DNA of 64,000 nt from Lepidodermella squamata (lineage: Eukaryota > Animalia > Gastrotricha). Position numbers and translations under genes: made by a program. Within the stretch, counting starts at the first letter, position 1, and every line of letters starts with the position of its first letter. Of the stretch, positions 1,286 to 54,614 are shown in pieces. The notes beneath the pieces are model-generated. The model was given only the letters and a program-made list of their open reading frames with translations. It was not told where the DNA came from and did no database searches. The DNA lies in the NCBI GenBank assembly GCA_047495785.1, contig JBLDXI010000046.1, positions 1,178,001 to 1,242,000 of the forward strand, in the 5' to 3' direction.

Positions 1286-4200
1286 TTATTCAAAAATTCC
1301 GTTTTCTTCGAAAGTTTTGATGATCAGCCGACGCTTTAGGTTCAAGGCCAGAGCCATGGGAGAAAAAGCCTGCCGATTCTTCATTGCAATGAGCTCGGGG
1401 TGATTTTTAAGAAAGAACTGCACACCTTTAACCCAATCCTCCTCAACAGCGATATGCAATACGGTGTAATCAAAACAGGCCTCGTCGCCTAAAAACGGAT
1501 TTGCGCCCTTTGAAATGAAATATTTGACTAGTTCGAGGTTTTTGCACCAAGCAGCCAAGTGGAGGGGTGATCGGCGGAATCTACTCAGCGAATTGACTGA
1601 AGCTCCGTATTTTTCAACCAACCGATTTGCAAGGAACGAGAAGCCACTTTTAGCAGCTAAATGCAATGCGTTGAAGCCATTTTCTTGATCTAAAGTATTT
1701 TTCGCTAATTCAGGGTAATAGCCCAAAATACAAATCGCTTGGTGGAAGTAGTTTTTCTTGATGGCTTTACACAGTGATTGCGTTACAACTTCAACTTTCG
1801 TATCGGATTTAACACTTTTCGTAAGTTCAAGGCACTGACCAACTATTGAGGTTTCGCCTCTATGAGCAGCTTCTTCGAACAAACTTCTCTCGTTATTTTC
1901 AATTTTTCCAAACAAGCACTGCTCTCTTGAATCCTCTGAATCGGCAATCAAATCCAAGAATCTTTGAAAGCCGTAGTAATCTCCTTCCTGTATTGCCCGT
2001 TTCAATGCGAACATGTTGAATTTTCGCTGGAAATTTAAAAAATTGAAACAATTGAATGGTGGATTTAAAATAAACCCCCCCTAAAAGCTACGTTTTTCAA
2101 TAATTAGGAAAATAATGATAAATAAGTGATTTTGGGTGATTGGAATCGTATAGAAAAAACTTGAACAACGATACATCATTTTCACGGCAACCACAAAAAT
2201 GGTAGAAAAAATAAGGTCGAAACATTTGCACCCCTACAAATGGGGTTCCAGCACCAAATTTAAGCGTCTCAAAATTGAATGTCTTCGTTTATTTGCGATT
2301 TTGGCTTTTCCTAATCGGCGTTGATACCGCGATATTTCTTCTGGAAGTCTTTGGCGGTGGGTAGAAATATTTTAAATGCTGCTCTCTGCTTTCCAAGAAT
2401 CGAAACTACTATCGGAAAATATCCAAATTTTCAGTTTTACATTGGGAAAATCGAAAAATCTCAAGGAGGGGAATTTTTTCATTTTTTGGAAGCGATGTGT
2501 TCGAGTGCAAAATTTATAGTGCGGAACCCCAGATTTGCCGCATGGCACTTGGCGCACAACAAAATATATCCACGACGAAATTCCCGAATCAATTTTGAAA
2601 TTAGCGTCCGGAGCATTAAGGCCTCATCTACTAATCCTATTTAATTCGATCATCGACTCAGGTTCGATTCCTAAACAATGGAAGGTAGCAATAGTTAGCC
2701 CGCTACACAAAGGTGGCTCTAAATCAGATGTAGGAAATTTTCGCCCGATTTCGATTCTTTCACCGATCTCAAGAACATTCGAACGCTGCCTTTCCATCCA
2801 AATTAAGGAACATATATCCGATATCCAATTTTTATCAACTAGCCAATTCGGTTTTCGCAAATACCACTCAACAGACAGTTGCTTAGCAAAATTGACGAAC
2901 GACTGGCGTAAGGCCCATGAAATGGGACTAACTACTGTTGCTGTTGCTATTGACTTAAGTAAGGCGTTCGACTCATTACATCATGACGGAGTCTACAAAT
3001 CACTCGATAGCGCTGGTTTTTCCTCCGAAGCTGTAGGCCTCATCAGAAACTATCTTTCGGACCGATCTCAGTTCACCAAAATTAATAGCCTTTTATCAAA
3101 CCAAGAGCCAATTTTGTACGGAGTACCACAAGGTAGCGTACTAGGACCGTTATTATTTACATTATACATCAACGAGATGGCCTCAATTCCTCGTTTTGCT
3201 AAATTAATTCAGTTTGCCGACGACACCACAGTTTATCACTCGGGTAAAAATGTCGAAAAAATTCAGAGGGAACTTCAAGACGATTTGAACCGTCTGAGCG
3301 ATTGGCTTGCTTCAAATAGCCTTATGGTCAATGGTAAAAAATCCCAGTTGATCGTGCTACCAACTGACTATAACACACTTTCCCCACCAAAATTCGATAT
3401 CAAAATTGAAAATTGTCCGATTGAAACAACATCGTCGTTCAAAATCTTAGGTTTCACTCTTGATAACAAGATGTGCTTCAAGGATCATTTGAAAGTGATT
3501 AGGAACAAAACTCGTAGTGGTCTATTTGCGTTGAGAATCGCTGCCAAATATCTCGACCGAAAAACGCTAAAACTGATGGCAAATGGTCTCATTTTCTGCC
3601 ACCTGACGTATTGCGACACAACTCTATCGCAATTGGCACCTACGAAATTAAAGAAACTGCAAAGGCGCCAGGACCAGGCTGTCCGAATAATTTGCCGCGC
3701 TCCAGCGAACGCCGACCCGGTACCGCTGCGACAAAGTCTGCGTTGGCTAGATTTGGATGGGAAGCGTAAAGTCCATCTGGCTACCTTGATCTGGCGGTGC
3801 TTAAATGACGAAGCACCGGTTGCAATCGCTGCTTTTTTTACCAAGCAAACCGCGACGGGCTCCACTCGAAGCCAAACAGCCAAGAAAACTATGAGCTGTC
3901 TCCTTAAAATGCCAAAGACAAAGTCCAAGACCATGGACCGTTGTCTTGAACACCACGGGGCAGTTTTTTGGAACAGTTTGCCCGACGCAGTGCGCTCTGC
4001 AACAAGCGCAGATCAGTGCAGGAACTTGGTCTACAACTACCTATTAAGTCTGGCTCCCAACACCAATCTCAACAAAAAGCCAGCAGCCTGAAATGAAACC
4101 TATACTCCCATATTTTTCTACCATTATTGTTGCTCAATTTTATACTGATTTTTGTCAACTTATCTAACATGATGTTTTATAACTACATAATCTTGTGTAC

Positions 4201-7095
4201 AGTTTGATCAAACCCTAACTAATCCATTGTCTTTTTTTACAGCTGAGCTTTCCAACTTTTTCTAAAAACGGATGAATGGCTCCTAAATAAAATAAATAAA
4301 TAAGCCAAACGCGAGAAATTTCCTTATCATGCAGAGCGTCTAAATTTCAGCGGAATACAATTTCAAATTCGTCGAAAAATGCCCAACCAATTATCAGAAT
4401 TAAAAATAAATTCCAAGTAGCCAGTAACACTTCTCCCCAAAAGTATGTTCAGTATTTCTTCAAACCTCTCCGTCCGCTTCGCTGTCATTCGTAAGTTCGA
4501 AGTACGGGTCAGAAATCCCCTCCAAAGCGTCGCTAAGTTTGAACTCTTCTTCCCTGATATTGCTTGTAATTCGGCTGATATTCGTCGATGTGTTCTCAAT
4601 CTTTTCCGAATAAAAAATAAAATAAATATATAAATGTTATATAATTAAAGGGTGTGCCAACTGCACCTACCTAAATAAAGACTCCAGCACTAAATTTGGA
4701 GCTCCAGCACTAAATTTGAAAGTCGCTCCCACTAATCCTATTTAGGACTAAATAAGCAACTCTAGCACTAAATATACAAAGCCACCACCTAATTCATGGA
4801 TAGGAATGCCATCATGTCGCACTGGCGAGGCCGCTGGATAGCAGTTACTTCGAGGATCAGCCAAGCGACCGGGGGCCTATTCCCTGTACCCTATCCCCAA
4901 GCAAGATGAATCAACCATGAAAAATTTCACACTAAGTAACCACACATTTGGTTGTAATGTTATTCCGCCGCTGATCGCAAGCAGGTTCACGCATCACTGG
5001 CAGGTCAAAGGTCAAAAGTTTGCCAGGCCGTAAAAAATAAGCTCCTATGCAAATAAGGCAGGGTGTTGAAATCTAAGTTACGTTGAGAAGGCCTCTTTTA
5101 GGAGGGAAGCATTAGTCTACCATAGTCTACCATAGCCATGGGCAAATAGCACTATTTTAGTCTTTGCTACTAGCCGCTCGCCTCCTGCTGAAACGAGACG
5201 TGGCAAATCATGACAGTCCCATCTATATCCTATCCATTTCATAAGGTAAAAGCCGTCTGTTACCATGCATTATTGCGCAACGCCTAACCTTTAAACAATG
5301 ACTGCGATAATAGAGATTGCAATGTCTCAATTAGCTCTAAATGATTATTGAAGCTCTGATAAGTTTTCGGAAGAAGCCACCGAAATACAGTCCATAGTCC
5401 ATACTGTAACTCAGTGTCCCACCATGATGGTCCCGCGTAAAAGAGCCAATGGCGGCGTTCGGAGCAAAGTTGTCGGCAGTGAGCAAAAGAGTGTATCATA
5501 ACGCGATGCTAATCTCAACGTCATGGCTCATTTGCATAATAGGCCTTATTTTCATGTCTGCCATTAAGCAATCAAGCTAAAATTTCAGAATCTTCATTTT
5601 TATTTAAAGTTGAATTTCTCAAAACGGATATAGAACATGCATATTTGAGGTAGGCAACCCAACTGTTGTGACGATACAAAAACCGCTTTTTTACTACGAT
5701 TTCATTTATTTTGATGAGATCAAGACTGAGGAGCAATTGCCCACCTCAAATCTTATATATACCACATGAAAGAGCAGCTCGCGTTCTACATGCTTTCAAA
5801 ATTTGTTGAACAATGGAGAAGCGCTCGATATAATTAGGCAAATCAAAATTTCTGCTTGAGTGCTTATTCTGGTGACTTTTTCTCTATATGGGAATACGGT
5901 AAAACCCTAAGCATGCATGGTCTGAAGACGCGTGGTCGAGAATGCCTGAGAGCCTCATCTGGTCTTAACAGCAGTAATAGACACTGAATGCTGATATTTA
6001 GTGCTGGAACTCATATTTAGGTGCCCAAATAATTTAGTGTAAGCTGTTTGCAAATTAGGTAAACGTACTCTCAAATTTAGTGCTGGAACCTTATTTTAGG
6101 TGGTGCACTTATTTAGACCCATAATTAAAACATCACCTTAGACCAAGTGGAACCGATTTTTCTGCGAAACTCGGCGATTTCTGACATCTGCTGGTCGAAA
6201 ACTGACTTTGACGCGATCACATCCGCCTCAGCCAGCAGTTCTTGATCAACTCGAAAAGAAGCATTTTTGCTGATCGTTTTGCGCAATTCATCCGCCATTT
6301 CATCAACACCAGACTCGAAATTGCTCTTCCCCAATTCGATAGATTGTTGATATTTGGATTCGGTATCAATCAAAAACGACTTTAACTGCTCTTTCAATTC
6401 GGAAACTTGCGATTCGACAGATTTTATTCTGCTGTTCACTTTCGCTTCATCGGTCAAATCAGAAACCTTCTCCTCAATCTATAAATTGATGCCAAAAATT
6501 AGCGAAAATTATTTGATTAAAACTAACATTTTTACTTTGATTTTCAAAGCAGCGATTTCTTTCCGCATATTTTCAGCGTGGAGGTACCGACAGCCTTCAC
6601 AAAAACTACGCTGGCAATGCGAACATGTTACCGAATCAATCGAGACTGATAGATGAAAGCAATGGTCGTTTTTTGACACATCGAAATCACCTTTGTTTGA
6701 CGGCCGCGATTTTTTCGGCACTTTGATAGAATCAATTGTTCGCGTTAATGAGATATTTCGAGTTAGACCTATGAATACAAAAATTATTTCAGAATTTTCA
6801 GGGTGAAAATAACCTCTAACGCCGTGTTTTGGTAGGGTAGAAACAGTTCGGCATTCCGGGCAGGAAATCGTGGTTTTATCGGCGTGGGCTTTCACGACTT
6901 GAAAAATGCATTTGAGGCAGAATGAATGGCCGCAAACTGGTAGGAATCGAGGATCCAGATAAAGCTCGTGGCATACCGGGCACGATGCCGACTGGAATAT
7001 CGCAATAATAATGAATTTTTAAAGTTTTCGAAAATTGAACCAACTTTTTCAGCCGAGCTCATTTTGCGTATTTTACTAGGTGGAGAATTACTCAT
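1286..7095 (-). CDS. TRIM-like E3 ligase, RING + B-box-like + coiled coil + ankyrin repeats (TRIM-ANK copy 1)
   Basis: Exons approx. 7045-7095, 6814-6991 (RING: CPVC..CGHSFCLKC..CPECR), ~6536-6768 (CFH..CSHC..FCEGC..H), 6137-~6478 (coiled coil), 4466-4600 (45 codons, IENTS..DGE), 1286-2026 (ankyrin: ALHLAA, SPLHLAA, TVLHIAV). All junctions GT-AG and frame-consistent; the last two introns are expanded by mobile elements. Confidence 0.8.
2571..4303 (+). mobile_element. 5'-truncated non-LTR retrotransposon (CR1/L2-group LINE), RT domain and 3' end, antisense in an intron of TRIM-ANK 1
   Basis: ORF to 4091 with RT motifs WKVAIVSPLHK, FRPISILS, QFGFR, DLSKAFD, GVPQGSVLGPLLF, FADD and the C-terminal WNSLP motif; 3' UTR ends in a (TAAA)n tail at ~4284-4303; no endonuclease present. 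Confidence 0.93.
4650..6120. mobile_element. Non-autonomous Mutator (MULE)-like DNA element in an intron of TRIM-ANK 1
   Basis: Perfect 9-bp direct repeat ATAATTAAA at 4641-4649 and 6121-6129. Imperfect TIRs GGGT...TGCACC..CCTAAA..TCCAGCACTAAATTTG at both ends, with repeated CCAGCACTAAAT subterminal motifs. No transposase ORF. Confidence 0.75.
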
Positions 7096-7388
7096 GGAAC
7101 ATTAATCCGAAAAATTCTAGAAATAAATCATTTGATAATGGAAAATGTGTATTGCTCGTTTAATCATCGTAAATTCGAAAGAAATTTACCCAAGAATTTT
7201 GAAATAATAATATGCAAATCTGATCAATATCAGACCAACAAACCGACTATGGAAAGAACCGTTGCAATCGTAAGAAAACATATCAGCTAACGTGAAACTA
7301 GAATTCGATAATAATTATATTAAATTTCACAACTTTGCCAAATAGTCGCGATTCAATATTCACATAACATACGAAAAAAATAAAAATG

Positions 7389-10220
7389 TTAATTCAAGCA
7401 TGAACATTCAACAGTGTCGACTTGCATGCTTTGAATGCGATCCAACGCCTCGTCGAAGAAGTCTTTCTCCTGTTCGCCTCGCAAAACTATCCGTTCGATT
7501 AAATGAGATTTCGCCTCAACCTGCAATCGAAAATAATATCGTTTTATGACCCCCATAAATCGATAGCTTTGAGGAAATTTTCATATTTATTCCTTTGACA
7601 TTTGAAATGAAACTAACCTCAGTCCACAGATTGTTCGCGTTCACCCATAAATCCGCAACTTCTTCGAGCTGACAGTCCAAAATAGACTTTGCAGCGAGAA
7701 CTCTTGATTTCTCCAAGAAGCCATCGTCAATTTTGAAACAGAAGGCGTCTTGAGCATCAAGCTGCATTTCTTCAGCGATTTCATTCACATCAAGTTCCAG
7801 GTATTTTTGCTTCTCTTCGATAATTTGCTGGAAATTTTTCGCCATCGACGCAAAATAGTCCTGTATTTCAGCCTTGGCATCGCGGACGATTCGGTCGATT
7901 AGGTCCAACTTATCATTCAATTTGTACTCATTCGCATTTTCAGTATGATTTGAAACCTGTAAAATTATAATCATAAATTCCGTGTGTTCCATTAGTTCAG
8001 TTTCATTCAGTTGTTCAGTTCATAGCGCAACGAATCGACTATAAAAAGCTTCTTGAAACTATCAGCCCTGGAAAAATGACGACAGTTTTTCCTGTCCTTG
8101 GTTTGAGACTAAACGTGGCGAGGCTTCTAAACACCAAAAAACCCGAGCAACCCCAAAAATAGGTTTGATTTCATAATCTTTCCGAACTTTTTCTTTACAC
8201 GTCGCCGTAAGACTCGGCTGATACAATTGCTTGGAAAAATGTGAAATTTGCGCAATTTCTCGCCTATATTTGACAGCCCGCAAAGCAAGCTTTGGCTATT
8301 TCTGACTTGTCGAAAATCAAATGGAACTCAGATGACCGTATCTTGCGAAACACATTTGCTGATCTATTGACCTTCACAATGAAAAATCAATAAGTGAAAC
8401 TGGCCGATTCTGTGCTCGCCGAATTTCAAGTTTGACCGGCTCAAGAAGCATGAATCGGTGCCATATAAACGGCAATTCTGCTTGAATTCAAAGAGCGAGT
8501 GACAACCTATCAATCTGGCACTCAACTGCGAACACTTTGCTCTCGGTTACCGTTCATCTTGCGCAGCTCAATGATCAAATGAGCTCAAGTCCTCAATGGA
8601 AAATTTTTGGCGACTTCGATCTTACTACGCTGCCCCTGTACTCTTCCGAAGCGATGGACCTGATCTTCCGCCAAGTTTCTAAAACGTATCTGGTGTGACT
8701 CTGCAACTCCTAAGCAAACGGAGGTTTGTCGGAGTGATGACATATCTGTATAAAATAATAGTGGCAGGAAGAGGCACGCCACAAATTCGGTCAAAATTCG
8801 CCAAGATTCGAAAACAGCGGATGAGAAGCCGAGCGACCGCAAAGAAACACTGGCATCAAATCAGCCTGCTTAAAAAGCCGTCGACCAGCGACACAAAGCC
8901 GTACAGGCGAATGCTGGAAATCGAAAAATGGAATAACATCCCGAGAGACGCCTTCCCTAACTTTGTTGATATAGAATTGTTTAAAGGTCAGATGAACGAT
9001 CTAGGCCACCACTGTTAACATCTGTGTGGTGCCGAAAACATGCTATATATATATAAAAAATCGTTCAAAAGTTCGGTCCAAAGCTCAACGGCCAAGGTTA
9101 AAAATTCAAGAGCACAACGGCTGAAAATATTTTGCCTGCACCCAACCACTGAAATATCCACAATCGATCTGCCATTTTGCGCTGGCTGCGACTTGGAGAA
9201 GCTATTGAAATTTAGCCCCACTTCGCTTCATGGGCGGTCTAGCGGTTGTCTGCGATTCCTAATGATTCGTGAGTCGATTTTCAACCTGATCAATTGTTTA
9301 CTGTTGATCGACAGTGAACACTGTGCGATAATTCAACATGAGCTCAGCTACTGGTCTTTTCAGATTAAATTTTGAAATGAGTACGAACTAGTTCGACCAT
9401 GCAACATACCAGTGATCAAAAAAATGACTGTAAGGCCTGCTGATGAAAACTTTCACCGTATATTTTCCAATTTTAGCCCATTTACTGATAATCGCCAATC
9501 GAACCATCCCTAAGCCCAGGGTTGAGGGGTCAAGTCGGTTCAAAAACATCAAAAAAAGTTGTTTGAATTTTCAAAATTTCGAGGTGGTGAAAATAAAAAT
9601 ATAAAGATTATAACATATTTGAAGAGAATTTTGAAAATCTGAGTCAACATACCTTAGAAATGATTTCTGCAATGTCTTTCCTCATTTTCTCAGCGTGAAC
9701 AAATTTGCACCCCTCACAGAAGTACAAATCACAGTGAAGGCATTTTTCTGGATTCGTAGACACCGCAACATGCGAGCAGCGATCACCGCTAGCAGCACTA
9801 ACAGCAGAGTCAAATTTATTCCCAGTCGGTATTTTCGTCTCAGAAATCGAGTCGATCATGCGGGCTAGAGAAATATTTCGGACAAGATCTATTCAAAAAA
9901 AATTGATTAAATTTTTATCGAAATTTAATATTTTTAGTTTGCCTTTAGTTCCTTTCTTCGGCAGAGGCGAAACCGTTCTGCATTCCGGGCATTCGATGTT
10001 CAACTTATTTTCACGGGCCGTCACGACTAGTTTGATACATTTCAGACAGAGCGAATGGCCACATTTTGGCAGGTAACGAGGGTCCGTAAAAATTCCGTGA
10101 CAAACGGGGCAAGTAGCTGACTAGAAAAAAATTTAATAGAGGAATTTCAAACAGGCTGATCTGACAAACTTTCTCAATTTCGCTCATTCTAGGCATCTTC
10201 GCTGCCGGAGAGCCATTCAT
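7389..10220 (-). CDS. TRIM-like RING + B-box-like + coiled-coil protein without a C-terminal domain
   Basis: Exon 1 10170-10220 (MNGSPAAKMPRMSEIEK), RING exon (CPVC..CGHSLCLKC..CPECR), GC-AG intron 9889-9942, B-box-like exon (CSH..CLHC..FCEGC..H), ~1.7 kb intron, coiled-coil exon ~7618-7956, last exon VEAKSH..CSCLN* ending at 7389. Confidence 0.75.
8600..9060 (+). mobile_element. Degraded 3' fragment of a LINE ORF2 within a TRIM intron
   Basis: ORF 8695-9018 (LQLLSKRR..YLYKII.G..H..WNNIP..FK) follows the L..RR..LYKI..WN.LP..FK pattern typical of LINE ORF2 C-termini; followed by a (TA)n/A-rich tail at ~9044-9060. Boundaries approximate. Confidence 0.6.
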
Positions 10221-10333
10221 CGTCGAATAATTAAATCCTAAAAACAAAATTTCCAAAATCATCGTTTTATTCATCATGATTATAAACCGCAACAACGAAC
10301 AATTTAATTTGGTAGAAAAATGAGGTAATTAAA

Positions 10334-12660
10334 TCAAGATTTTACGCCATTTTCCTCTAGAAAAGCAAGAATCTGAAAATTATTGGCCTGTTTAGCGACG
10401 TCGTAGGGCGTCTTACTGAAGCGATTCTTTTCGCTGCTCAAAAATCGAGCATTTTTAAATATCAATTTAACACCAGCGAGCCACTCTTCATAAACAGCCG
10501 TATGCAAAATTGTGTTATCAAAGTAGGTCATATCGACGGCTTTCGCATTAGCGCCTTTCAGTAGCAAATATTTAACAGCAACAAGAGATTTGTTAATAAC
10601 AGCCGTAATTAAGGGGGTCCTCGAAAATTTATCCTTCGCCTCGATTAACGAGCCGAACTCCTCGACCAGCATCTTTAAAATCGCATCCGATGTCGTAATA
10701 GTTGCTGCGACGTGAATGGGGAACATTTTTTCGCCATTAGCATTAATCCAACCAATTAGCGACTTGTCATAGCTGAGTAAATATCGTACGATATTGCAGC
10801 GATTATTCGAAATGGCGAGAAACAACGCATTCGCCAACACATTTTTCATCTCGTCCAAATCCGCGAATTTCGAGAATAAACATTTCAAAACTCCGAGATG
10901 GCCACGTTGCGATGCCTGTTCCAATATCGTTAAATTATGATCATCGCGATCTTCGTGGAGTAGTATAATTTCATCGCAGTCGCGATTCTCGTCCTCGAGT
11001 AATTTTTCCAGAGCTTCTCGATCGCCAATTTTTACAGCAGAATGCAGTTTAAAAATATGAATTAAATCCTGAACATTTAACCAAAAATCAAGATTTAAAA
11101 TAAGGAAAATTTTTGTACGTAGGGTTCCAACACTGAACCTGAGGCTCCAGCCCTAAATTTTTCCAAAAACTGGTTTTCAAGTCTTACTCAGAATCTTAAT
11201 ATCGAATTTGAATCTGAATTTGCGCTATCGCCAATATCGATTCGAAGTATCGATTTTATACAAATCAGTGATTTTTTCGATAATCTGCAATCTTGAAATT
11301 CTTCTACCAACCTGATGGTACAGGTTAGCTAAAATCCTAAATTTAGAGCTGGAACCTCGAGCAAATATTTAGAACCCTAATCAAAGACAAACGTCATCAG
11401 TTTCCTCGGTTGTCTTGAGACTGGTCTCCCATTTCAGCTGGAAAGTTTTCAGCTTTTCTAGCTCGGCTATTAAATGAGCTTCGAGGGACTCGAATTTAAC
11501 AACAATTCGACCAGTATACCTCGATTGCTCATGCACCTAAAGCAATTAAAATATTGATTCCACCTTATTTCCCTCGAAATAAAGACCTTTGTGTAAATTG
11601 AGCTCAGAAGTATCCTCAAATCGGCAATATCATTGAGAGGGCAATCCAGGACTGATTTCGTAATAATCTGCTGAGCCGCATCAAGAGGGGACGAATCGAT
11701 TTGGAGAGCTAAATTCCTCTCGATCATTTGATGCCTTTTCCACGAAATTTCCAGAACTTGATTGCGCAGCGCATCTCTAGCGCTTCCAATAATATCATTG
11801 ACTCGGGCAACAAAAGACTCAAGAAACGAGTCAATCCCTGAATAAGCCACGATCATTTCTTGATCAATTTCTTTCCGGCAATTTGAAGCCTCATTTTCGT
11901 CTTTCAGGAATTGGACGCGATTTTTAACCTAAAAATAGCCAGTTATTTAATTCCTAGAATATGGCGAAATAATTAAAGACCTCAGCAGCTATTCGAATAA
12001 TTTCTTGCTTCATTTTCTCAGCGTGCCTGAATTGGCAACTCTCGCAGAATCGCTTTTGGCAATGATTGCATACAACAGCCGATCCACTTTCGATCAGCCA
12101 ATGGCTGCATGATTCATCGAACGAAGCCATCAACGGGTCACTCGGTGCCTTCTTTTCGCCAGGTTTCTCCGCCGATGAAGGCATAACAGCCTCCTTGAAT
12201 GAATCGACAGCTCGAGCTAGCGATATATTAACTTGAAACCCTAATCGAATGAAACTTTGAATTTTTCATGAATCTCATGAAAGACATATACCGTTGAGAC
12301 CTGCCGGGGGGACTTGATTAACAACGCGGCATTCAGGGCAACACATTTTTGACTTATCGGTTTGACTTGATAAAATAGTCCCGAGGCATTTAAAGCAAAA
12401 CGAGTGACCGCAGTTTGGCAAAGACCGGGGGTTCTCGTAGAAGCCCAAGCAAATCGAGCACGAAAAAGACTGAAATATCAAATCCGCAGGTAAATTCGAA
12501 ATCCTAAAAAACTCATCAACAAGTTTACCTTATGAACATCTGCTATCTTCGATACTTTAGCTGGAGGACCATCAGGAGACTGCGAGAGGAAATGGCAACG
12601 AGTATTGCCACTTTTCATAATCACTCGTAATATTTGATTTCTAACACAAATAACCAGCAT
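10334..12660 (-). CDS. TRIM-like E3 ligase, RING + B-box-like + coiled coil + ankyrin repeats (TRIM-ANK copy 2)
   Basis: Probable ATG CTG micro-exon at 12660, then SPDGPPAKVSKIADVHK exon, RING exon (CSIC..CGHSFCFKC..CPECR), B-box-like exon (CSH..CNHC..FCESC..H), coiled-coil exons, linker exon ending ..WETSLKTTEETDD, phase-0 intron, then ankyrin exon 10334-~11068 (DLIHIFKLHSAVKIGD.., TPLITAV, TILHTAV). Start is uncertain. Confidence 0.8.
11122..11377. mobile_element. Small MITE-like inverted-repeat element related to the 4650-6120 element
   Basis: Ends GGGTTC...GAACCC flanked by TA; internal inverted CTCCAGCCCTAAAT / ATTTAGAGCTGGAA motifs similar to the CCAGCACTAAAT motif at 4683-4716 and ~2245. 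Confidence 0.5.
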
Positions 12661-13171: not shown

Positions 13172-15345
13172 CTACACCGAATTTTCATGCCGATGATGCT
13201 GGTGGCGGTTGCACTTGTGAACATGGTGGTGCTTCCTGATAACAAAAAGTGTATTCGATAGCTAACTTTAGTTTTACAGTCATACCCGTGTTTCTTCTCG
13301 AACTCTGCCAATCGCGCGTGCTTTGAACAGCAGTGACCATGTACCTTTGGCTTCTTCGGGTCCGAAAGGGCGCTGTTAGGAGTCTAGAAATCAACCGAAA
13401 AGGGTCATTTGCATTCATTGAAAACAGTAATGATTACCTGAAGAGGGCGTTTGAGAGTTTGAGGCGGTTGAGTACCAGATGTACCAGGAGTGTCCATTCG
13501 TGATTGTTTAATCTCTTGTTGCTTCAATTTCGCCTCCTTCTCCAGCTCTTTCACGATTGACTCGTCGGTTTTCGAAGGGTCAACCCATAGTGAGCATTTT
13601 GTACACTGTTTGCACGGTTTTCCTGGTTCGCGGAAGTGTTGACAGAAGTGATTGTAGCTGATCTAGGTTAACAATTTAGTCACTTATTATTCAGCCCTCG
13701 AGCAAATTTCAAAGAATCTGGTCGAAAATAAATGAAAAATTGTATTTACATTTGGAGTTCTGCAGACATAGCAGAGTGTACCGCCGCACGAACACTTCAT
13801 TTTGTTGCAGCCTTCTGATTTCACGATTCCAGTGTTGCACTTTGGGCACTTCCTAATTACAGCTTGCGTCATTTTTTCTTCAAACTGCCGACGAATTCGC
13901 GTTTCTTCGGTTTCACCAGAAACCTCGGCGCAGGTTTTTCCAGCGTGTTCTTTCCACGGCTCTTGACATTGCCGGCACGAGGTGTGTTCGCAGTTGTTGC
14001 AGGCTAGAACCTGGATTTCTGGGTCCAGCTGAAACTGGGCTTGGCATTTGGGGCATCGCACCAAGTCGGCAATCCCAGATACGTTAACATTGTACGAAGC
14101 GATCCGCTCCTCCAATTTCTTCAGCTGTTCCGCCGAAATGCAGCTCAAAGAAGCTCGTAAAATTGCTGCTTGACATTCATTTTCCATGCATTCTAGATAG
14201 CCACGCTTCACTCCGACTTCGATTTGATTCTTTACGTACTCGACCAAGCAAGGTTGACAAAATAGGTGACCCTCGGCACATTGAGTCATCAAGTCGAATT
14301 TAGCTTCAGTAAAACAACATTGGCATTCGATTCCATCACTTTGCTCACTGGTCGATGCAACAGCATCAGATGTGGATGGTACGTTAGATTCCGAAGAATT
14401 CGATTCGCCGTTGCTTGCTGGTCGATCATCAGGCGGCGTTGGAGGTAGGCGCGCGTTGTTGATGTCATTGATTTCTTGCAATAAGATGCGATCGGCTACT
14501 TGAATGCGTCGCGTTGGTCTAGCAGTTTGTAACAATCGGAAAATGGTACCATCTGATGCGAAATTAGTGAATAAAATCTCGCTAGATGGCAATATCAGCC
14601 CCTACCTTGGTGATGAATGATTCTGGAATGGCCGCTCCATTCCGTATTTAGCAGCGTTTTGCGCACCTCCCGAGGGTATAGAGGAGCTAATGGGTCGACT
14701 GTATCGAGATTAAAATCGCCCAAATGGCCTCGAATCGCATCGCGTAAATAATTTCGCGCATTCGTGTAAGTAACTTGTCTACCAAGAGCCGAGTCGATCG
14801 CGCCAACATAAAGCCATGGAAATTCATTTCTAAGCACAGCTTTAGCTTCGGGTCGATACGGCTATATATGAGCATACATTTCAAGCTGCTAATTTGATGT
14901 AAAAAAACTTTACATAGCTTCCGTAATAATAGGATGGAACTTTGGGGGCATCCCCCGATGCGATCTCTTCATTGGCATCGACGTCGGAATCGTCATCGGA
15001 GCCGTCGTCAGAATAATTGTGGGCCCGGCGGGTAGGTAAATCGCCAAAATCCACCTCCTCGTCTTCGTCACTATCTGGTTCATCCGGAGCGTGAACTTGG
15101 TCAAGTTCTGTTTCATTAGGTGCATTAGCTCGAGGATATGCTTCATTAAGTAACCGATCGAGAACAAGATTGGTGAATTGTTCATTCATTTCAACGGGAA
15201 TGTCAATGTTAGCTGGATCTTGAAACCGCAAGTCATCATCAATAACACCGAAATCAGCTGCCATAGCAACTACCAGACTCTTCAAGTATCGAGCATTACA
15301 GTCCGGCACTATCTCTTGTACGGCGAGATATATTCGTTCAGCCAT
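13172..15345 (-). CDS. RNF216: RBR (RING-IBR-RING2) E3 ubiquitin ligase, RNF216/TRIAD3-like
   Basis: RING1 CQCCF..CAEGHLFCQPCL, IBR (RCPKC..CNNC..CRQC..H..C), EEKMTQAVIRKCPKC..KSEGCNKMKCSCG..CYVCR, then YNHFCQHFREPGKPCKQCTKCSLWVDP, which is characteristic of RNF216; inferred His-rich last exon ending at 13172. Confidence 0.85.
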
Positions 15346-25310: not shown

Positions 25311-25357
25311 AGTGCTAAATCAAGTTTTTTTTCACTATTTTAGAGTTGTTTCTAGTC

Positions 25358-26069: not shown

Positions 26070-26160
26070 AAAAAATCATTATTTGTTTAAAAGAGTGCCG
26101 AGTTTTAAGGAGGATTTTTTCAATTTTATTTCTAGATTTTTTAAGTGTGTAATAAGTGTT

Positions 26161-28530: not shown

Positions 28531-29037
28531 ATTGAATGAAAAAACTGAACTTAATTGACAGATCAAATGATGATTTTTCTCCTTCTCTTTTGCTCTCTCG
28601 CGCTGGCACTCGTCATTTGTATTTTTTTTACTCTTTTGCTCATACTCTTTCGTTGATACTTAATTTCGGGCTTTGACAGTCCGTTAAGGTGGCGGTCATA
28701 ATAGCAACCGTTAGAAGCCTCCGCAAACACGGTTCTTTTTTCAACCGTGAGATTTTCTGGTCCTCCCTAATATTTGATTGACGCTAAAACCTTCCACCCA
28801 GACTTCCTATTTACGCATAATGATTATACATATGGTTCTAAATTTGCAGCGATTGATGCAAAATATTTCTTCAGATTTTTTCCCTGATTTATGAGAGCTT
28901 GTATATCAAAACATTTTTTGACGATGCAAACAAAATAAAACTGATTATTTTCTAACAATTTTATTGCGAAAAGTCATGATTACAGTAAATCTGATGATAA
29001 AGTTATAGGTGAAAGAGAAATGCAACAAGCGAGGGCA

Positions 29038-30279: not shown

Positions 30280-30357
30280 TATAAATTACAAAAAGGCCTA
30301 AATAAAATCGTTCGAAATCACATACAAAAATTGCCTCGATTCATCAAGTACAAATTT

Positions 30358-32004: not shown

Positions 32005-32114
32005 TACAATTTATCAACAAATGTGTCTATAGTTGTTAGATCGAGTAGATATTTAATGCAAAAACCTCAAAAATTGATTATATAACAATGATGACGATGG
32101 AACGTGCAAAAAAA

Positions 32115-33694
32115 TTATGTAGATTCGTCCAAGTTGTCTTGGGCGCCGTTGTCGATGAGGAAATCTGCCACATCGCTGTCTTCGTCTTGGGACGCTAGAC
32201 GAAGAATGGTTCTTCCTTCAGGTCCCAAAGCGTTGATGTCCGCACCCTTTCCAATCAAGAACTCCAAATTATCGATCCGGCGATTAATCACAGCCATTTT
32301 CAGAGGTCGGAACCAATCACTGGCCCAGTGCTCCCGAGCAGCCTGATTCTTCTCAAAGAAATATTTCAAAATTTCAACATTCGAATTTGCAGCGGCTAAA
32401 TCAAGTGGCGTGTAGCAAAATGGTTCTCGGTCTTCTGCGAAAATGTCCGCTTCCATTTCCTCGACTAAAAATCTGACCAGGTCGATTTTGCCGGATTCGA
32501 CGGCATTGTGCAATAACGTACGATCGAAATCCTCTTCGTCTTCGTGACTCAACAGATCATCTATAACTTGTTTAGATATGTTGGGCCTGGTGAGGTGATG
32601 CTTAACCATCTCAGTATCCCCACCCCTCGCGGCATTATGCAGCTCGAACGGCAGCCGCACTTTCATCTAAAAACATCAAAATTAAAGTTTTTCCGCAATT
32701 TCGAAAAAAATTTACAATTTCTTCCGTTTCAGACGTGTCCTTCCATTCAACTGGTTTGTCTTCGAAAATTAATTCAGCCAATTCATCACAAAGCTCAGAA
32801 TTTGGTTCCACGTCAATAATGCCACCGATGAAACTTCGCTCAAATTGTTCGGCATGTTTGCTGATTTCGTCGGATTTTTTCGAGATCTTCCCATACAAAT
32901 CAGCGATTTCAGTGGTGCACAACTTGGCAACGGGATTCTCGCGTAAAATAGCTACTTGCCGCCTGATTTCGTCCATTTCTAAGCCAGCTGTTGGAGATTT
33001 ATTCTTCAACAAACCCATTTCATTCAGCTTTTTGTAGTAAATCGCGTCAATTGTCTCGAGCAGATTTTCGTACCTTTTATCCAGTATAACAAGCAGGTAC
33101 TCTTCCATTTCTTTTCGATCTCGATCAGCCTTCGCGATGGCTTCGTATCTTCGTTCTTCCAAATAACGCTCTGCCGTTCCGACTCGACCATTATCCCGCC
33201 GTCTATCGTCAATTTTCTCGAGAGTTTTGATAATTTCAGCTTTAAGCAACTCTGAATGAACCTTTTGGCAACTTTCGCAGAATTTCACCCCGCAATGAGG
33301 GCAAGAAGGCGGCGTTTTTGTCAGGAAGACGTGATTGCAATGATCGGACAGCGTCTGAATCCTGGAAGCATCGCCAACTTTTTGAGCATTTTCGAACTCC
33401 TCAATCGCTCTTTGGAGTTGAACATTGGTTTTCAGGGCTCCAATACCACCTGGGCCTAGACGACTCAGCGTATTACAATCAGGGCATTTGACTGATTTGG
33501 CATAGCCAAATCCTTTCAGTAGGCAGTTCGAGCAGAACGAATGCCCACAGGCCGGCAAAACTTTTGGAATCTTGTAGAGACTCGAACACAACTGACATTT
33601 GAAAGCCTGGCGTTTCAGTAGAATAAAAAAATGTAAAAAAATGTTGAAATATTTTTACCGATAACACTGAACTTGATGCAGCAGCTTCAGTCAT
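32115..33694 (-). CDS. TRIM-like E3 ligase with C-terminal ankyrin repeats (TRIM-ANK copy 3)
   Basis: Exon 1 MTEAAASSSVLS; exon 2 AFKCQLC..CGHSFCSNC..CPDC, B-box-like CNH..CPHC..FCESC..H, coiled coil ending WKDTSETEEI; short phase-0 intron; ankyrin exon 32115-32666 (LHNAARGG, LLHNAVESG, TPLDLAA). Confidence 0.85.
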
Positions 33695-33814
33695 GATAAG
33701 AACACTAGAATCAATCAATATTTGCACAGAATTTATTTTGCCTTGAATAATCACATTTGAATCATATTCTTTGAATCACATCTCTAACAATTCAATAAAA
33801 CAGTCTTATACATA

Positions 33815-34972
33815 TCAAATGTCAGCGAATTGAGCAATGAAAATTGAAGACGACTTTGGTTTTGCGCCAATCATTATCGGGAGGGTCGGGTGGTGAGCAA
33901 TGAAGCTCTGTTTTTCCAATGATATTTTCGAGTTTTTCAAGTTTCGCTTCGTGAAGTTTGCGTCAGAGCCGGAAGAATAAAACAAAAACAAATCGTCAAC
34001 GCCACAGCTCAACAAGAAAGAATTTTTCACAGTTGGATGCCAAATAGGCCGTAGATTTCGGGAAGAATCCGGAAAGCACTTGATGATTTTGAGATGGGCA
34101 AATGAAGGTTCCAAACGGTACAGGCGTAGAGCATCGTCGTTACAGTTGGCAAGGATAAAACCAGGATCCATAGGGTTGAAATGAGCGTAATTTGCCGATA
34201 GATTGCGATGATAGGCTGCGGCGATAGGCTGCGACTCATCATCGAGACCGGATTTAAGCATTCTCGAGTCCCAAACAGCGATTGTAGGGTCGCTTGCATC
34301 CCATTTCGTCAGCGGCGAAGTCGTGCATATCAAGCTCGTGCATGGGAAGGTTGAAACCGAAGCTAAAGGCGACCGACAGGCAGCAAAAGTTTCGAAGCCA
34401 CCAGAACGAGAATCAAACCTGGTCAGTTTTCCATCACGTTGACCAAGCCATAGATTGCCATTCTCTCTCTGGCTCAATCCGGTGAACGGCACTTTATCCT
34501 TATGAACGTAAACAGTCGTGACACATTTCTCAAGCTCATTTTGATAAAGCTGGCCATCCGATCCGCACGACAGCAAGTTAGAATTCTCAAAGGTAATACC
34601 GGTTACGATCCCTTTGTGGGAGGCCAACTTTTGCATCCCATTTTCAACAAGAACCACGACTTCACCCGACTCACTGCCAGCAGCAAAAATTAGCTTCGAA
34701 ATCGATGGATGGATTCCAAGGGCACTGACTTGATCAACCAGGCTAGATTCGCAAACAGATATCGCTGCAAGTTGGAGATTTTCAGGGCCCGGAATTTGAT
34801 TTATTTTACTAGAATATTCGGCAAAACTTGGTGGTGCTTCTTCTGCAGGCTGTGGGTAACCTTCGTGATTACCACTAGCAACATGCTTATCCAACGGTTT
34901 ATCAGAAATGAAAGGATTCACGAATTCTGGTTGAGCCCAATCGCCATAAGATAAACTTTCCGATTCTGTCAT
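33815..34972 (-). CDS. WD40-repeat protein, WDR76/CMR1/DDB2-like
   Basis: Intronless ORF with VSALGIHPS..AAGSESGEV, HKGIVTGITF, TIAVWDSR, AHFNP, RPIWHP, HHPT motifs resembling the WDR76/DDB2 propeller; likely start MTESES at 34972. Confidence 0.65.
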   Translation of the reverse strand: MTESESLSYGDWAQPEFVNPFISDKPLDKHVASGNHEGYPQPAEEAPPSFAEYSSKINQIPGPENLQLAAISVCESSLVDQVSALGIHPSISKLIFAAGSESGEVVVLVENGMQKLASHKGIVTGITFENSNLLSCGSDGQLYQNELEKCVTTVYVHKDKVPFTGLSQRENGNLWLGQRDGKLTRFDSRSGGFETFAACRSPLASVSTFPCTSLICTTSPLTKWDASDPTIAVWDSRMLKSGLDDESQPIAAAYHRNLSANYAHFNPMDPGFILANCNDDALRLYRLEPSFAHLKIIKCFPDSSRNLRPIWHPTVKNSFLLSCGVDDLFLFYSSGSDANFTKRNLKNSKISLEKQSFIAHHPTLPIMIGAKPKSSSIFIAQFADI

Positions 34973-48126: not shown

Positions 48127-49427
48127 TTTTTTGCTGAAAAAAGGCATCTGATGACTGTGAAATTACTTAATCATTCAAAAGCCTATAACAAGAAAGAATA
48201 TGTTACTTAGCATAAACATGAAGCGGCAAGACGCGCAAATAAGCCGATGAATCAAACGGATACGTAATAGCTAATATCTGCTCTTTCACACTGGGAACCG
48301 ACATAGGTAAGGAATGATCAGTCCGAAACGCATGCTCAGGTGGGTGAAAATGTTGCGTAATTACCGAGACAATCAGGTTCAAGATTCAGCTTTTGGCCTC
48401 TTAAAATATATAGTCACGCTCTTCCTCAATTTTTCATTTTAGCTCTCAAAGATCTACTCATAGTATGTTAATACTAAAATGGCTGTGATTCGAAAATGAT
48501 GAAAACACAAATTTACTACAACGTTGGGGTTGGACTCGCGAGAATGGCATGCAAGTCTGGACCCAGGAGACGAAACTTTTGGTTTTAAGCTTTTAGTAAA
48601 TGATAAATATCATATATCATCGCAGATGCGAGTGACATGATCGTGCTAGATACGCAATCGGAGATTAACAAAAAAGGGCTAGAAAGTTAGGTTCTAGCGC
48701 ATTCATTGCTAACGGCAATTCACAATCAACCAATGCAACTCAAGCAATTCCAATTTAAAAACTAATAAAAACCGGATGGATCGAAGCTTGCTGTTGAATA
48801 TATTTAATATCCAAATATAGCGCTTGAATTCGAAAGGAGAAAGGACAGACAGGTGCGTACGTTGCACCCGCAGCGGACTGGAGAACTTAGATGTCGCACC
48901 TGAGTGAGGTGACGCCAGGTAAGAGAAACTTTTAGAAAAAACGCAAAAAGCTTGATGCTAAAAAATAGCACAACAATTGTTGTATGTTCAGTAATTATAT
49001 CAGGCTACTTAGAGAAAAATTTCGGATCGTCATTTTTTGACGTGAAAAACAATTGGTCCTTGAAATTTCACATTTTGGCGCGGACTGTTTTCTCTGGGTT
49101 TCAAAAGTCCACGTTTGATGTGCTGGCAGTGACGAGCTTCGAGCTTCCCACTGTGTTGTAAGGGTAGCACAAGAGGATTCCGGCTCTCCTTCAATTTCTG
49201 TACTACACGTCATTCTACGTGTCTATTTGTGGCTTCTATCCTATTTAATTGCGTTATGCGTTATTGCGTTTCGTGCATTGTCCACCAGATAAGTCTCGCT
49301 GCCCTTTGTCCACCTGCTCCGCTCTTTTCTTTGTCGGCGATCTCCTTTAAATTTATATTGAATTTTTGTGTGTTTAGATGAAATTAGATGAAACCACCAT
49401 TATAACAGTTGAAATATCAAAATCTTG

Positions 49428-50310
49428 ATGGGTCATATTCTCAGCTTGATTGCATCCGAACATCATGGGAGTAATGCCAATATGGCGGTTACGTCCTTTC
49501 AGGATCTTAGGAAGCTTCCACCAGAGGTGGCACTTCTGATCCTGTCCAAGCTGAATGCCACTGAATTATGTCTAGCTGCTTGTGTGTGGCAAGAGATGGC
49601 GAACTGCGAATTATTATGGCAGAATCTGTGTTATCAGTCATGGGGTTATGTGACCGTTTATTACTCAATGAGCAGCCGGCAGTTAAGCTACAAGAAGTTG
49701 TATATGATTCTTGATGAATGCTCAGTCATGTTCAATGTTGACCCGCAACGAGGACTTCGGATGCTATTTGATCAAAATTTACTTGTGGATGATGCAAAGG
49801 AGATCGCGAAGTTTGTTCATTCTACTCGAACATTGCGGGCGGAAAGCAAGAGACAACTGTTTAAACTGAGGCCTGAGATCCTAGACGAAATCGTCCAACT
49901 GCAGAGCTTCGAAAACGAGTTTCTACCGAATGCTTTGAGGCTGTTCTTCTCATTATGTGGCACACCCAGTGAGAGAGACTCATTTCTATCGCGATTGATT
50001 GATCGTTTTTCAGAGAGATTTCTAGTTTGCAACCCGAAAGTGCACCTCAATAAAGGTAAACTTGAAATTTGTGTCAAGTATGATGATGTTTATAACAATT
50101 TTTCATTCAGATGCTGTATATTTACTTTGCTATTCGTTGATTTTGCTCTCGGTTGATCTCCATAGCCCGCATGTCAAGACGAAAATGAGCAAACGAGAAT
50201 TCATTCGAAATACCCGGAATGTAATTCGAGATTTAGACACTGACTTCGCTGGGCATTTGTACGACAATGTTTGGATTCAAGGCCATCTAGCTCCAAGGCC
50301 TCGTCAATGA
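49428..50310 (+). CDS. FBXO8: F-box only protein 8 (F-box + Sec7-like domain)
   Basis: LPPEVALLILSKLNATELCLAACVW F-box; FENEFLPNALR.FF, DRFSERF, [intron 50056-50110] DAVYLLCYSLILLSVDLHSPHVKTKMSKREFIRN. Confidence 0.92.
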
Positions 50311-51280: not shown

Positions 51281-51471
51281 TTTGACGCCGATTTTGTAAA
51301 CGAAATTGCCGGTTTAACCGTTCTCTGCTATCAACTGCAGCGTGAAAGCTCTTTCACATTTCATTCTAATTAAATTAGTTTAAATTCCGGTTGAAATATG
51401 ATAATAAGACAAATAAAGTAAAACTGTTTGTTAATCATCTAATTTTTCGTAGAATTTATTTCAATTGAAAC

Positions 51472-51959
51472 ATGACCGAATACACTAAGCCGTACCAGTT
51501 TGGCGTTCCGGACCGCATGGTCGCCAATAAGTGCCCGGGTAAATTGAGCGAAAACGCGAAAGCTCACCCGTTGGCGGATGGCAAGCCGGCGGAGTTGTTC
51601 TCGGACGAATCGCACCTGCGCCGAGTTCGCGCCGATTTCGGCCTGCACATGGCCCTCCGCCTGGCTATGGAACGCTCCATTGTTTCTGGCGCGTTCAACT
51701 CGCCGTCGGGCATTGGCGGCCACCGCCTTCACACCGGCTGCCTGCCGCCATCGCACGCCCTGGTTTCCAGCTTGACCGGTCAAGATCTCGAATTCGGCTT
51801 CAAGGACGTCCTTAATCGTAAATTATTGAATTTCGTCATCTGCCTTGAATTTTTTTTCGATTTTCAGCTCCTGAATTCGCTGAGCAACTGCGCGATCCTC
51901 ACAATTTCGGCGAAGTCGATATGAAGATGAAAAAGCACGCCAATGCCGGCTTTATTTGA
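51472..51959 (+). CDS. POMP: Proteasome maturation protein (UMP1/POMP)
   Basis: HPL..FGLHMALRLAMER..L.PSH....LTG.D..FGFKDVLN-[intron]-PEFAE..DPH, the UMP1 family pattern. Confidence 0.82.
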
Positions 51960-52153
51960 ACGCTGATTATTGACAACCACTGAGAATCAGTGGCTAAAAA
52001 AATTCCGGTCCAAACACTCGATTGGTGATAGCGAAAATTGCAATTTCTGCTCTCTTTGTCGTTATTATTCTAGAATTAGCAATAAAAGAATCACGCTGAT
52101 TGTTTTTTTTAATTTTACTCTAGATATTTTGCTGTGTTATTTCTACCGAATAA

Positions 52154-54614
52154 ATGTCTCAAAAGACAGCTGATTCCAACGGGGTAAAAGCCGGAGAAAA
52201 TCGCTGAAAATCGAATTATTAAGGAGGATTTTTTATTTCAGGGTTTGACCTGCTACGTTTGTTCCAATGTGTATTCCCACCCGAAGAATCTGCCGCAGTG
52301 CCACCACACGTACTGCGCTTCGTGTCTTCGAAAATTTCTCGTGCCTATCTCCCAACAGCAGTTTACCATCACTTGCCCCGAGTGCAAGCTTGTTAACTCG
52401 ATCGGAAAGGGCGGTATCGAAAAATTGCAACCGAACCACGCCCTAGAGAGAGCGATTGCTTTCATGCGCAAGGTTGAACAACCCCTGGAGGTGAAACCGA
52501 CGAATGACTGCCCGCATGCTAAATTGTTTGCCAACTGTACTACCTGCCCTCATTGCCATGGAAAATTCTGTTCCGGCTGCATTTTCTTGCACATGGAAGG
52601 CCTTAAACTCGATATTGGATGGATTGGAAGTGGAGTAGGCTTTGAATTTTTTTCGAAAAATGCCTCCTTGAAATTATTTTCATGTTATTTTAAAGCTCGA
52701 GGAGCGATTGACTAAAATTGAGAAAGAGGTTGACGAGGCGAAGGCTGAACAGGTGGTTTCCAAGCAATTGGCGGAGGCTGAGCAAGAAATTACGGCGAAA
52801 TGTGAAGAAATGAAAAATTCCATCAACGAAAAGTTGGTCGAGCGCTGCAAGAATTTGATTGATCAAGCTCGTGCGTCAGCGGCTGCTCAGGTCAAAAAAT
52901 TCAGCTCTGGTGCGAATCTAGTCAAATACAAGTCGGACGTCCAAGCTCAGCTGCAAAAAGTGCTCGAATCATCTGTCTCGCATACGTCCATCGAAGAACT
53001 CGTCTTCATTTTCAACAAATTTTCCAAATTCGATAGAGATGTGAGGAATTTTAAGAGAATTTATTGAAATAAATATTCCGATTTTGATTTTATTTTTCTA
53101 GCTTGGTCACATCGAGGCAATCAACGAAGGCCTGAAAGCTGGGAAGTTTGGAGAAACTCACCTGCAGCTGGCTAAACTGCCGAATTTCGAGAAGCTTTTC
53201 GCCGATGGCGATAAATTCATCTGGAAAGACGTGGAAATCCAGGAAAAGGTACATTTTAGCTTCTTTTCTTAGAATTTGCGATCAAAATCAGCATTTTCTG
53301 AGCAGTTAAGCCGATATCGATTTTCGGTATCGATTTGAAAAATCAAGGATTTTTCCGATTTTAATTAAATTTTGTCTACATACTTGAATGTACCAAGTGG
53401 CTTTAATGAAAAATTCCTAGATTTTAGGGTTTATCGATCAAGAGAGAAAACATTTGAAATTGCAAAAAATCTGAAAATTTAGTGTTGCAAATATTCAAAC
53501 TAATTTCAATTCCGCTAATTAATTCCAAACTCCTATAATTTATAAAAAAAATGTCTTGATTGGATTGAAAAAATCTGCCGCCTTAAAAATGAATTCATTA
53601 CATTTTTCATTATTTTTTTACTAATTTTTACAGTACAAAGGCGAGCTCGCTAAATTCACCCACGCCCTGGAGACTGAGGACATTGAAGCCGTGAAGGAGA
53701 TTCTCACCCGCCCTACCCTATCCCCCTCAATTCGTCGCCACATTCTCGACCACGACGTCTACAGCCGCCAGCAGCTCATCAATCTCGCCGCTTCAATCGG
53801 CGATTTGGACCTCGTGAAACAGCTGGCCAACAAAAAGGGCGTTTCCCTACTGGAACCTACCCACAAAGCCGCGTCCAAGGGTCATTTGAATGTGTTGGAA
53901 TACTTGCTAGCCGAAAGGCCTCCGCTGCTGGAGAAGTGCGACTGGGCCGAATCGACTGTTCTGGTAACAGCGGCTGAAAACGGCCAACTCGATGCTGTGA
54001 AATACCTAATCGAAACGAAAAAGGCTAAGGTCAACCCGCCGAAGTTGCACTCGCCATTCCTGTGCGCTCTCCGCGAGAACCACTTCGAGGTCATTAAGTA
54101 CCTGCTGGAGAAGGGCGCCGATCTGAACGTGACGTCGCCGTCTGTTAAGGAGGAAGATCTCGTCGAGGATTCGATGTCTGGCATTCATTTCGCAGCTAGC
54201 CGTGGCCTGCGCGAAATCACTAGCTTTCTGCTATTGACCAAGCCTGATTTGGCGAATTTGAAGACGCCGAAGCTGAACACGCCGCTGCATTTCGCGGCCG
54301 GCAATGGCCATCTCGAGATTGTGAAGGATCTGATTAAGAACTACAACGCGAATCCTGAGGCGAAAAATCGCGATGGGAAATCGCCGCTGGACTTCGCGGT
54401 TGATGGCGATCATCTAGAAACAACGGTCAAGTTTTTGACTGAGTTGAAGAATGAGGCGAAAAAGGCGGCGCCGGTCGTCGAAGATCAGCCGAAACCTGCC
54501 GAGGTGCTAATTGACATTACTGTGGAAAAACTGCTCGAAACAGTGGGGGAGCAACAGCTGCCGGTTGTAACTGCTGAGGCTGCTTCCGCTCCGGAAAATG
54601 TTTCGTCGTGCTAA
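52154..54614 (+). CDS. TRIM-like E3 ligase with C-terminal ankyrin repeats (TRIM-ANK copy 4)
   Basis: Exons 52154-52183, 52242-52634 (RING CYVC..CHHTYCASC..CPEC; B-box-like CPH..CPHC..FCSGC..H), 52696-53040 (coiled coil), 53102-53248 (..WKDVEIQEK), 53634-54614 (ankyrin repeats: HKAASKGH, TAAENGQ, TPLHFAAGNGH); phase-0 junctions in frame. Confidence 0.87.

Follow-up and report, generated by a model that had tools for sequence, protein, structure and literature searches.

A 64,000-nucleotide (nt) stretch of the genome of the gastrotrich Lepidodermella squamata (assembly GCA_047495785.1, contig JBLDXI010000046.1, positions 1,178,001 to 1,242,000; hereafter the window, in whose own numbering positions are given) carries seven diverged, neighboring genes of the TRIM type of ubiquitin ligase. 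All seven encode a RING, a B-box-like zinc motif and a coiled coil (together RBCC), and four end in an ankyrin-repeat domain, which is not a usual TRIM target-binding domain. The RBCC-ankyrin design is real, transcribed and rare. When the window was searched by tblastn with its own exons, seven RING and zinc-motif units were found, with RINGs that start near 7006, 10132, 12481, 30093, 31434 and 33621 (minus strand) and near 52230 (plus strand). The same search found four ankyrin exons (1286-2026, 10334-11068, 32115-32666 and 53634-54614), and no more of either. Exon borders were set from open segments, splice signals and homology, and the frames were then checked by script on the joined exon coordinates. 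One intact open reading frame (ORF) was obtained for each of the seven genes, as follows.

1286-7095, minus strand: gene 1, RBCC-ankyrin, predicted 559 amino acids (aa), intact ORF with all introns GT-AG; exons 7095-7045, 6991-6814 (RING), 6768-6536 (B-box-like), 6478-6137 (coiled coil), 4600-4466 (linker) and 2026-1286 (ankyrin)
7389-10220, minus strand: gene 2, RBCC without ankyrin, predicted 311 aa, sister of gene 1 on the tree described below; exons 10220-10170, 10120-9943, 9888-9653, 7956-7618 and 7520-7389
10334-12660, minus strand: gene 3, RBCC-ankyrin, predicted 596 aa; exons 12660-12529, 12469-12292, 12240-11981, 11928-11587, 11536-11393 (linker with a tryptophan-containing acidic end) and 11068-10334 (ankyrin)
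29038-30279, minus strand: gene 4, RBCC without ankyrin, 361 aa, intact ORF; exons 30279-30139, 30087-29910, 29857-29250 and 29196-29038
30358-32004, minus strand: gene 5, RBCC without ankyrin, 380 aa, intact ORF; exons 32004-31883, 31822-31735, 31419-30988, 30906-30544 and 30495-30358
32115-33694, minus strand: gene 6, RBCC-ankyrin, 492 aa; exons 33694-33659, 33606-32716 (RING, B-box-like motif, coiled coil and linker all in one) and 32666-32115 (ankyrin)
52154-54614, plus strand: gene 7, RBCC-ankyrin, predicted 631 aa, with a syntenic homologue in contig L002; exons 52154-52183, 52242-52634, 52696-53040, 53102-53248 (linker) and 53634-54614 (ankyrin and an acidic, proline-rich tail)

Every intron of the seven genes was GT-AG, except for one GC-AG intron in gene 2. 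Introns in this genome are very short (about 45-61 nt). The first-pass annotation of this DNA, made from the letters alone, had described seven genes that share a RING, a B-box-like motif and a coiled coil, three of which (genes 2, 4 and 5) stop shortly after the coiled coil. The tblastn search, the alignment and the seven intact ORFs bore this out, and genes 2, 4 and 5 were each found to end in an exon homologous to the linker.

In genes 1, 3, 6 and 7, the linker was joined to the ankyrin exon across an intron that was phase 0 and lay at the same homologous position in all four (junctions 4466/2026, 11393/11068, 32716/32666 and 53248/53634). The tryptophan-containing acidic stretch that the annotation had reported just before this intron in three genes was confirmed, as it had been quoted, for genes 3, 6 and 7, and it recurred in a homologue outside the window, L001. 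The four ankyrin exons aligned with each other from the first residue on. They matched Pfam ankyrin models at E values of 1e-15 to 1e-38 and hold about 5-8 repeats, as estimated from exon length.

Two public runs, X1 and X2, both covered positions 29000-34000. Contigs of X1 showed nine joints, all of them CT..AC (GT..AG in the minus-strand reading), and at one loose end a SMART complementary DNA (cDNA) adaptor; X2, a DNA run, covered the same bases with zero joints. Run X1 was therefore taken as cDNA. Its joints covered every intron of gene 4 (three) and gene 5 (four), so these two genes really end in their short last exon. One X1 contig also joined the linker of gene 6 to the ankyrin exon, as follows.

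32667-32715, minus strand: intron between linker and ankyrin exon of gene 6, 49 nt, phase 0; joint 32666/32716 (CT..AC) in one X1 contig, shorter side 57 nt

These data show that genes 4-6 are transcribed and, because of the last joint, that the RBCC-ankyrin fusion is present in the transcript of gene 6. The proposal that four genes splice through a phase-0 intron onto a single ankyrin exon was thus confirmed by a cDNA-type contig for gene 6; the other three junctions were reproduced as phase-0 models only.

The ankyrin ORFs could alternatively be separate genes, in which case the fusions would be artifacts of the gene models. Such an explanation could draw on the ankyrin exon of gene 6, which begins with ATG, and on the intron ahead of the ankyrin exon in genes 1, 3 and 7, which at 324-2,439 nt is long for this genome. 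However, the X1 joint already refutes it for gene 6, and in genes 3 and 7 no start codon that could serve lies close to the beginning of the ankyrin exon. Moreover, the same intron position and phase were found in five genes, including L001, and in L007, a contig from another public run, the coiled coil, the linker and the start of the ankyrin domain lie in one uninterrupted ORF. Separate ankyrin genes are, in our judgment, barely credible.

The RBCC half of the family is TRIM-derived and closest to the NHL-class TRIMs (TRIM2/3 and Thin-like proteins). The RING scored at E values of 4e-9 to 3e-6 with Pfam on the five exons scanned (genes 3, 5, 6 and 7), and for genes 1, 2 and 4 the RING was identified by tblastn and the alignment. 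It is an N-terminal C3HC4 RING of the TRIM type (TRIM2 RING at E 6e-8) and is 33-34% identical to that of TRIM2. The RING of the model described below superposed on TRIM2 (Foldseek TM 0.84; VIA Z 11.2 at a root-mean-square deviation of 1.0 Å over 71 residues), and the shared fold extends to the helix that follows. The solved structures closest to the single-exon RBCC of gene 6 were TRIM2 and TRIM3 (E 6e-8), and the alignment spanned the RING into the zinc motif. In the alignment, all seven genes retain the zinc-ligand pattern of the RING and the hydrophobic C-x-[IVL]-C position, which contacts the ubiquitin-conjugating enzyme (E2). Six of them also retain the basic residue that follows the final Cys pair, where gene 6 has Asn.

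The zinc motif that follows the RING was invariant in all seven genes (C-x-H...C-x-H-C-x4-C-x2-C-x3-H-x-E), with eight Cys/His residues at B-box2 spacing. It was located as follows.

33223-33354, minus strand: B-box2-like zinc motif of gene 6, with invariant C, H, C, H, C, C, C, H, E
30997-31125, 29622-29759, 11990-12124, 6545-6676 and 9662-9793, minus strand: counterparts of the zinc motif
52497-52619, plus strand: counterpart of the zinc motif

In a profile-profile comparison of the RBCC with canonical TRIMs (99.3%, E 2e-20, 177 columns), the alignment ran from the RING through the B-box2 ligands into the coiled coil, and the B-box2 ligand columns corresponded one to one, with the exception of the last histidine. 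Also in context, the profile aligned the motif with the B-box2 that Pfam recognizes in P0014, an NHL-TRIM. Since these in-context comparisons align its ligand columns to B-box2, we provisionally call the motif a B-box2 variant, which is common to this family and Thin-like proteins. Language-model neighbors were RING and B-box clusters. The coiled coil comes in fixed order and spacing after the B-box-like motif, and the profile alignments to TRIMs reach into it. In an AlphaFold model built on the seven paralogues, the RING and the zinc module were both predicted with confidence, and a helix of 90 residues (111-201) was followed by return helices at 207-223, 231-263 and 272-281. A wide VIA search with the complete model returned RING matches throughout and gave nothing specific on the coiled coil.

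A search of 1.84 billion representatives with the seven-paralogue profile returned 12,645 hits, the top ones being short ORF fragments of the same kind. Among the best 150 of these, many were 1,000-1,350 aa long, and those checked (P0013 and P0014) were RING...NHL proteins of the Thin type. Ankyrin occurred in none of the best 150, which are ORF-level calls on unspliced contigs and hence uninformative on ankyrin. A homology search with the 318-aa ORF of gene 6 found nothing, which does not show absence, and a search with a 25-row alignment found canonical TRIMs only among its best 8,000 candidates, which likewise does not show absence.

The family resembles the NHL-class TRIMs (class VII: TRIM2, TRIM3, TRIM32 and TRIM71, Drosophila Thin/Abba and C. 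elegans NHL-1) in its RING, its single, putatively B-box2-type module and its coiled coil, and it shares with the Thin-like hits the motif variant C-x-H-C ... H-x-[D/E]. It differs from that class in lacking the last B-box histidine, in a motif that the Pfam B-box model does not score, and in having an ankyrin domain in place of the NHL propeller or filamin domain. No NHL match was found in any of the seven genes, whose C-terminal exons are ankyrin or absent. Because the NHL propeller is missing, the family is not a member of class VII.

The history of the copies was examined with a maximum-likelihood tree of the RBCC parts of the seven genes, L001, P0001, P0003, P0006, P0013, P0014, P0021 and P0035. 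Genes 1 and 2 were sisters (support 98/94) with gene 3 beside them, and genes 4 and 5 paired inside a group with gene 6, gene 7 and L001. Terminal branches of the copies were 0.7-1.9 changes per site long. The ankyrin exons of genes 1 and 3 matched each other at E 3e-23 by tblastn. Since the tree nests the ankyrin-less genes among ankyrin-bearing ones, and since the ankyrin exons are homologous with a common intron position and phase, genes 2, 4 and 5 are most simply explained as secondary losses of the ankyrin exon, at least two of them independent. No ankyrin remnant was found by tblastn in the window downstream of the ankyrin-less genes.

Of the 40 differences listed between the public runs and the window, 36 fell in the coding sequence of genes 4-6, and these were 28 synonymous and 8 non-synonymous (13 to 4 in gene 4 and 10 to 3 in gene 5). 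This excess of synonymous differences indicates purifying selection on genes 4-6, the ankyrin-less ones included. If the ankyrin-less copies were decaying pseudogenes, the non-canonical GC donor of gene 2 and its 1.7-kb intron would fit. However, the ORFs are intact, and genes 4 and 5 are correctly spliced in cDNA contigs with 23 synonymous to 7 non-synonymous differences among those listed, so that we consider decay very improbable. A better account of the ankyrin-less genes is that they are derivatives by loss and that at least genes 4 and 5 have kept their function.

Homologues were found in other public assemblies. L001 and L003-L007 may belong to different species or may be further loci of this one. 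L002 is a different genome, with 73% nucleotide identity in a syntenic exon. Among the contigs of the best hits, ankyrin lies downstream of the RBCC in L001 and L007. In L001, a metagenome scaffold, ORFs for the RING and zinc motif, for the coiled coil and linker and for ankyrin stand in a row; the intron before ankyrin is 63 nt, phase 0 and at the same position, and the linker has the tryptophan-containing acidic end of genes 3, 6 and 7. A search of the Atlas with the coiled-coil-ankyrin ORF of L007 gave generic ankyrin clusters only, below 0.9. Another metagenome scaffold, L004, carries at 4464-6499 an RBCC homologue (P0003), then a 57-nt phase-0 intron and then a Neuralized exon (Pfam E 1.7e-11), which fits the first-pass annotation in its description of the terminal exon as modular. 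L005 and L006 have an RBCC with an acidic tail and no recognized domain. As a separate observation, a RING...NHL gene lies directly upstream of the RBCC-ankyrin gene in L001 (L001:212-3148).

L002 is syntenic with the gene 7 locus (L002:1-1520 against window 51685-53040). Over its first 255 bases, it is 73% identical in nucleotides and 82% in protein to the last exon of the neighboring UMP1-type gene, whereas the gene 7 counterpart is 35-40% identical. This synteny and the difference in identity indicate that gene 7 is old, has been held in place and is changing much faster than its housekeeping neighbor. Within the window, paralogues were 34-64% identical in the RING, 32-55% in the B-box-like region, 22-36% in the coiled coil and 27-36% in the ankyrin domain. 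At the overall protein identity of 25-35%, synonymous sites between paralogues are saturated.

One alternative reading is a diversified intracellular recognition system, antiviral or directed against transposons, in which ankyrin would be a rapidly evolving sensor like the PRY-SPRY domain of TRIM5 or the fish finTRIMs. The tandem arrangement, the identity of just 22-64% per domain, the fast change of gene 7 beside its UMP1-type neighbor and the swapping or loss of C-terminal modules are all compatible with such a system. However, the ankyrin domain is no more diverged than the coiled coil, the differences between runs and window are mostly synonymous, the terminal branches make the copies old rather than recent products of birth and death, and gene 7 has been kept at its locus across assemblies. 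Diversifying selection centered on the recognition domain is not indicated by the domain identities or by the 28 to 8 count, a crude test with no site-wise analysis. We therefore consider this system unlikely. The annotation had called the family rapidly diverging, and the syntenic copy of gene 7 is one case in support; ankyrin as the specially diversifying part was not supported, nor, given the 28 to 8 count, was the suggested role in immunity, which is at most a possibility. A more far-reaching idea, to which we also give a low probability, is that the RBCC chassis with its phase-0 terminal intron is a plug-in platform, and that the large tandem repertoire of ligases with exchangeable modules (ankyrin, Neuralized or none) to which it gave rise in this animal lineage surveys the cell interior for viruses or transposons. 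If true, it would be the invertebrate equivalent, with another sensor fold, of the SPRY-TRIM expansions seen in vertebrates.

The ankyrin-less genes had also been proposed to act as partners or decoys of the ankyrin-bearing paralogues through coiled-coil heterodimers. They do keep the RING, zinc motif, coiled coil and linker, they adjoin ankyrin-bearing genes, and genes 4 and 5 are transcribed. However, the coiled coils of the nearest pairs are 24% (genes 1 and 2) and 23-25% (gene 4 or 5 against gene 6) identical, compared to 40-64% for their RINGs, with 64% in the sisters 1 and 2. Low identity in the coiled coil next to high identity in the RING argues against pairing and would be expected of paralogues that form homodimers. 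The ankyrin-less genes also keep the ligand pattern of the RING and the E2-contact positions, so that they may be ligases themselves. Taken together, these data do not bear out pairing with ankyrin-bearing paralogues, which we regard as quite unlikely.

The reading that we consider likely is that the seven genes are old, much-diverged paralogues of a lineage-restricted TRIM branch that arose from the NHL class, in which ankyrin replaced the propeller and was lost at least twice, and which works in the TRIM manner. The branch would derive from proteins of the TRIM2/3/32, Thin and NHL-1 type, the C-terminal NHL propeller having been replaced by an ankyrin domain that is encoded by one terminal exon after a phase-0 intron. 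As other TRIMs do, the proteins would recruit E2~ubiquitin through the RING and dimerize through the long helix in antiparallel orientation. Folding back of the linker and return helices would bring the ankyrin domains onto the rod as the putative substrate-binding part. In genes 2, 4 and 5, the ankyrin exon would have been lost at least twice separately, with ends that fall exactly in the linker. The recognition module would be exchangeable, because the terminal intron is phase 0 and a relative has Neuralized in the same place.

Several points weigh against this reading or limit it. The ankyrin junctions of genes 1, 3 and 7 are predictions, which leaves one transcript-proven junction of four. 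Gene 2 needs a GC-AG intron, so the predicted gene may be defective. The zinc motif was not significant with the Pfam B-box model (PF00643); taken alone, it found no B-box by fold (Foldseek, VIA) or with a PDB profile, and its match to a B-box by hhalign was a weak profile match. The tree has very long branches, partly moderate support and exon rows merged per gene, and is indicative. The count of synonymous and non-synonymous differences draws on 40 of the 97 differences between the public runs and the window. Lastly, E3 activity, dimerization and ankyrin-mediated substrate binding are properties that we infer from sequence.

Several known systems share parts of the likely arrangement of a TRIM-derived RBCC with a terminal ankyrin domain. 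In Mind bomb, plant XB3/XBAT and the ankyrin-SOCS-box (ASB) proteins, ankyrin is the substrate-binding part of the ligase, and by analogy the window family most likely works in the same way. However, its domain order is the reverse of theirs (RING first and ankyrin last), it has the B-box-like motif and coiled coil, and its RING is of an unrelated type; the Pfam XB3 RING model scored 15.7-24.7 on the family against a cut-off of 50. The immune PRY-SPRY TRIMs (the TRIM5/22 cluster and fish finTRIM) likewise form tandem arrays of many diverged RBCC genes whose C-terminal recognition domain varies, but the window family has a different C-terminal fold, old copies and no sign of positive selection centered on the recognition domain. 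Human TRIMs of the class C-V type have no C-terminal domain. Genes 2, 4 and 5 likewise end shortly after the coiled coil and linker, but on the tree they read as derived from ankyrin-bearing ancestors in one local family.

Other features of the locus were also noted. The last two introns of gene 1 are 1.5 and 2.4 kb long. Within the 2.4-kb last intron lies, in antisense, a 518-aa reverse-transcriptase ORF of a retroelement (2535-4091, plus strand; Pfam RVT_1, E 7e-34), to which we attribute the great length of the intron. The GC donor of gene 2 (9942-9943) is in the intron between RING and B-box, and the homologous phase-1 intron of genes 1, 3 and 4 has GT. Genes 1-3 all begin with a related short exon that encodes a basic stretch rich in P-x-K (7045-7095, 10170-10220 and 12529-12575); the first exons of genes 4-7 are unrelated. 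Same-strand spacers are just 78-113 nt long between genes 6 and 5 (32005-32114), genes 5 and 4 (30280-30357) and genes 3 and 2 (10221-10333). One cDNA contig of gene 5 departs from the genome at 32028 (window 32026-32030), at an AG 22 nt 5' of the ATG, and runs on into 25 letters without a match anywhere in the window. This extension and the tight spacing may reflect a trans-spliced leader and an operon-like arrangement. Further genes of the ubiquitin system are an RBR-type ORF at 13687-14592 (minus strand), with two IBR matches (E 2e-9), and an ORF with an F-box and a Sec7 domain at 49425-50156 (plus strand).

TRIM ligases are classed by their C-terminal domain, and ankyrin lies outside the described classes. 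The annotation had stated that ankyrin is not a standard class, and this agrees with two TRIM surveys (PMC2533329 and PMC3503706), in which the word occurs 0 times; in searches of the full-text literature, no paper was found that describes an ankyrin-bearing TRIM class. An ankyrin-tailed family that is expressed and under selection, together with its ankyrin-less derivatives and a Neuralized-bearing relative, implies that the RBCC scaffold accepts a repeat-type binder. Together these genes form a series, made by nature, in which the influence of the C-terminal module on the choice of substrate by TRIM ligases can be studied.

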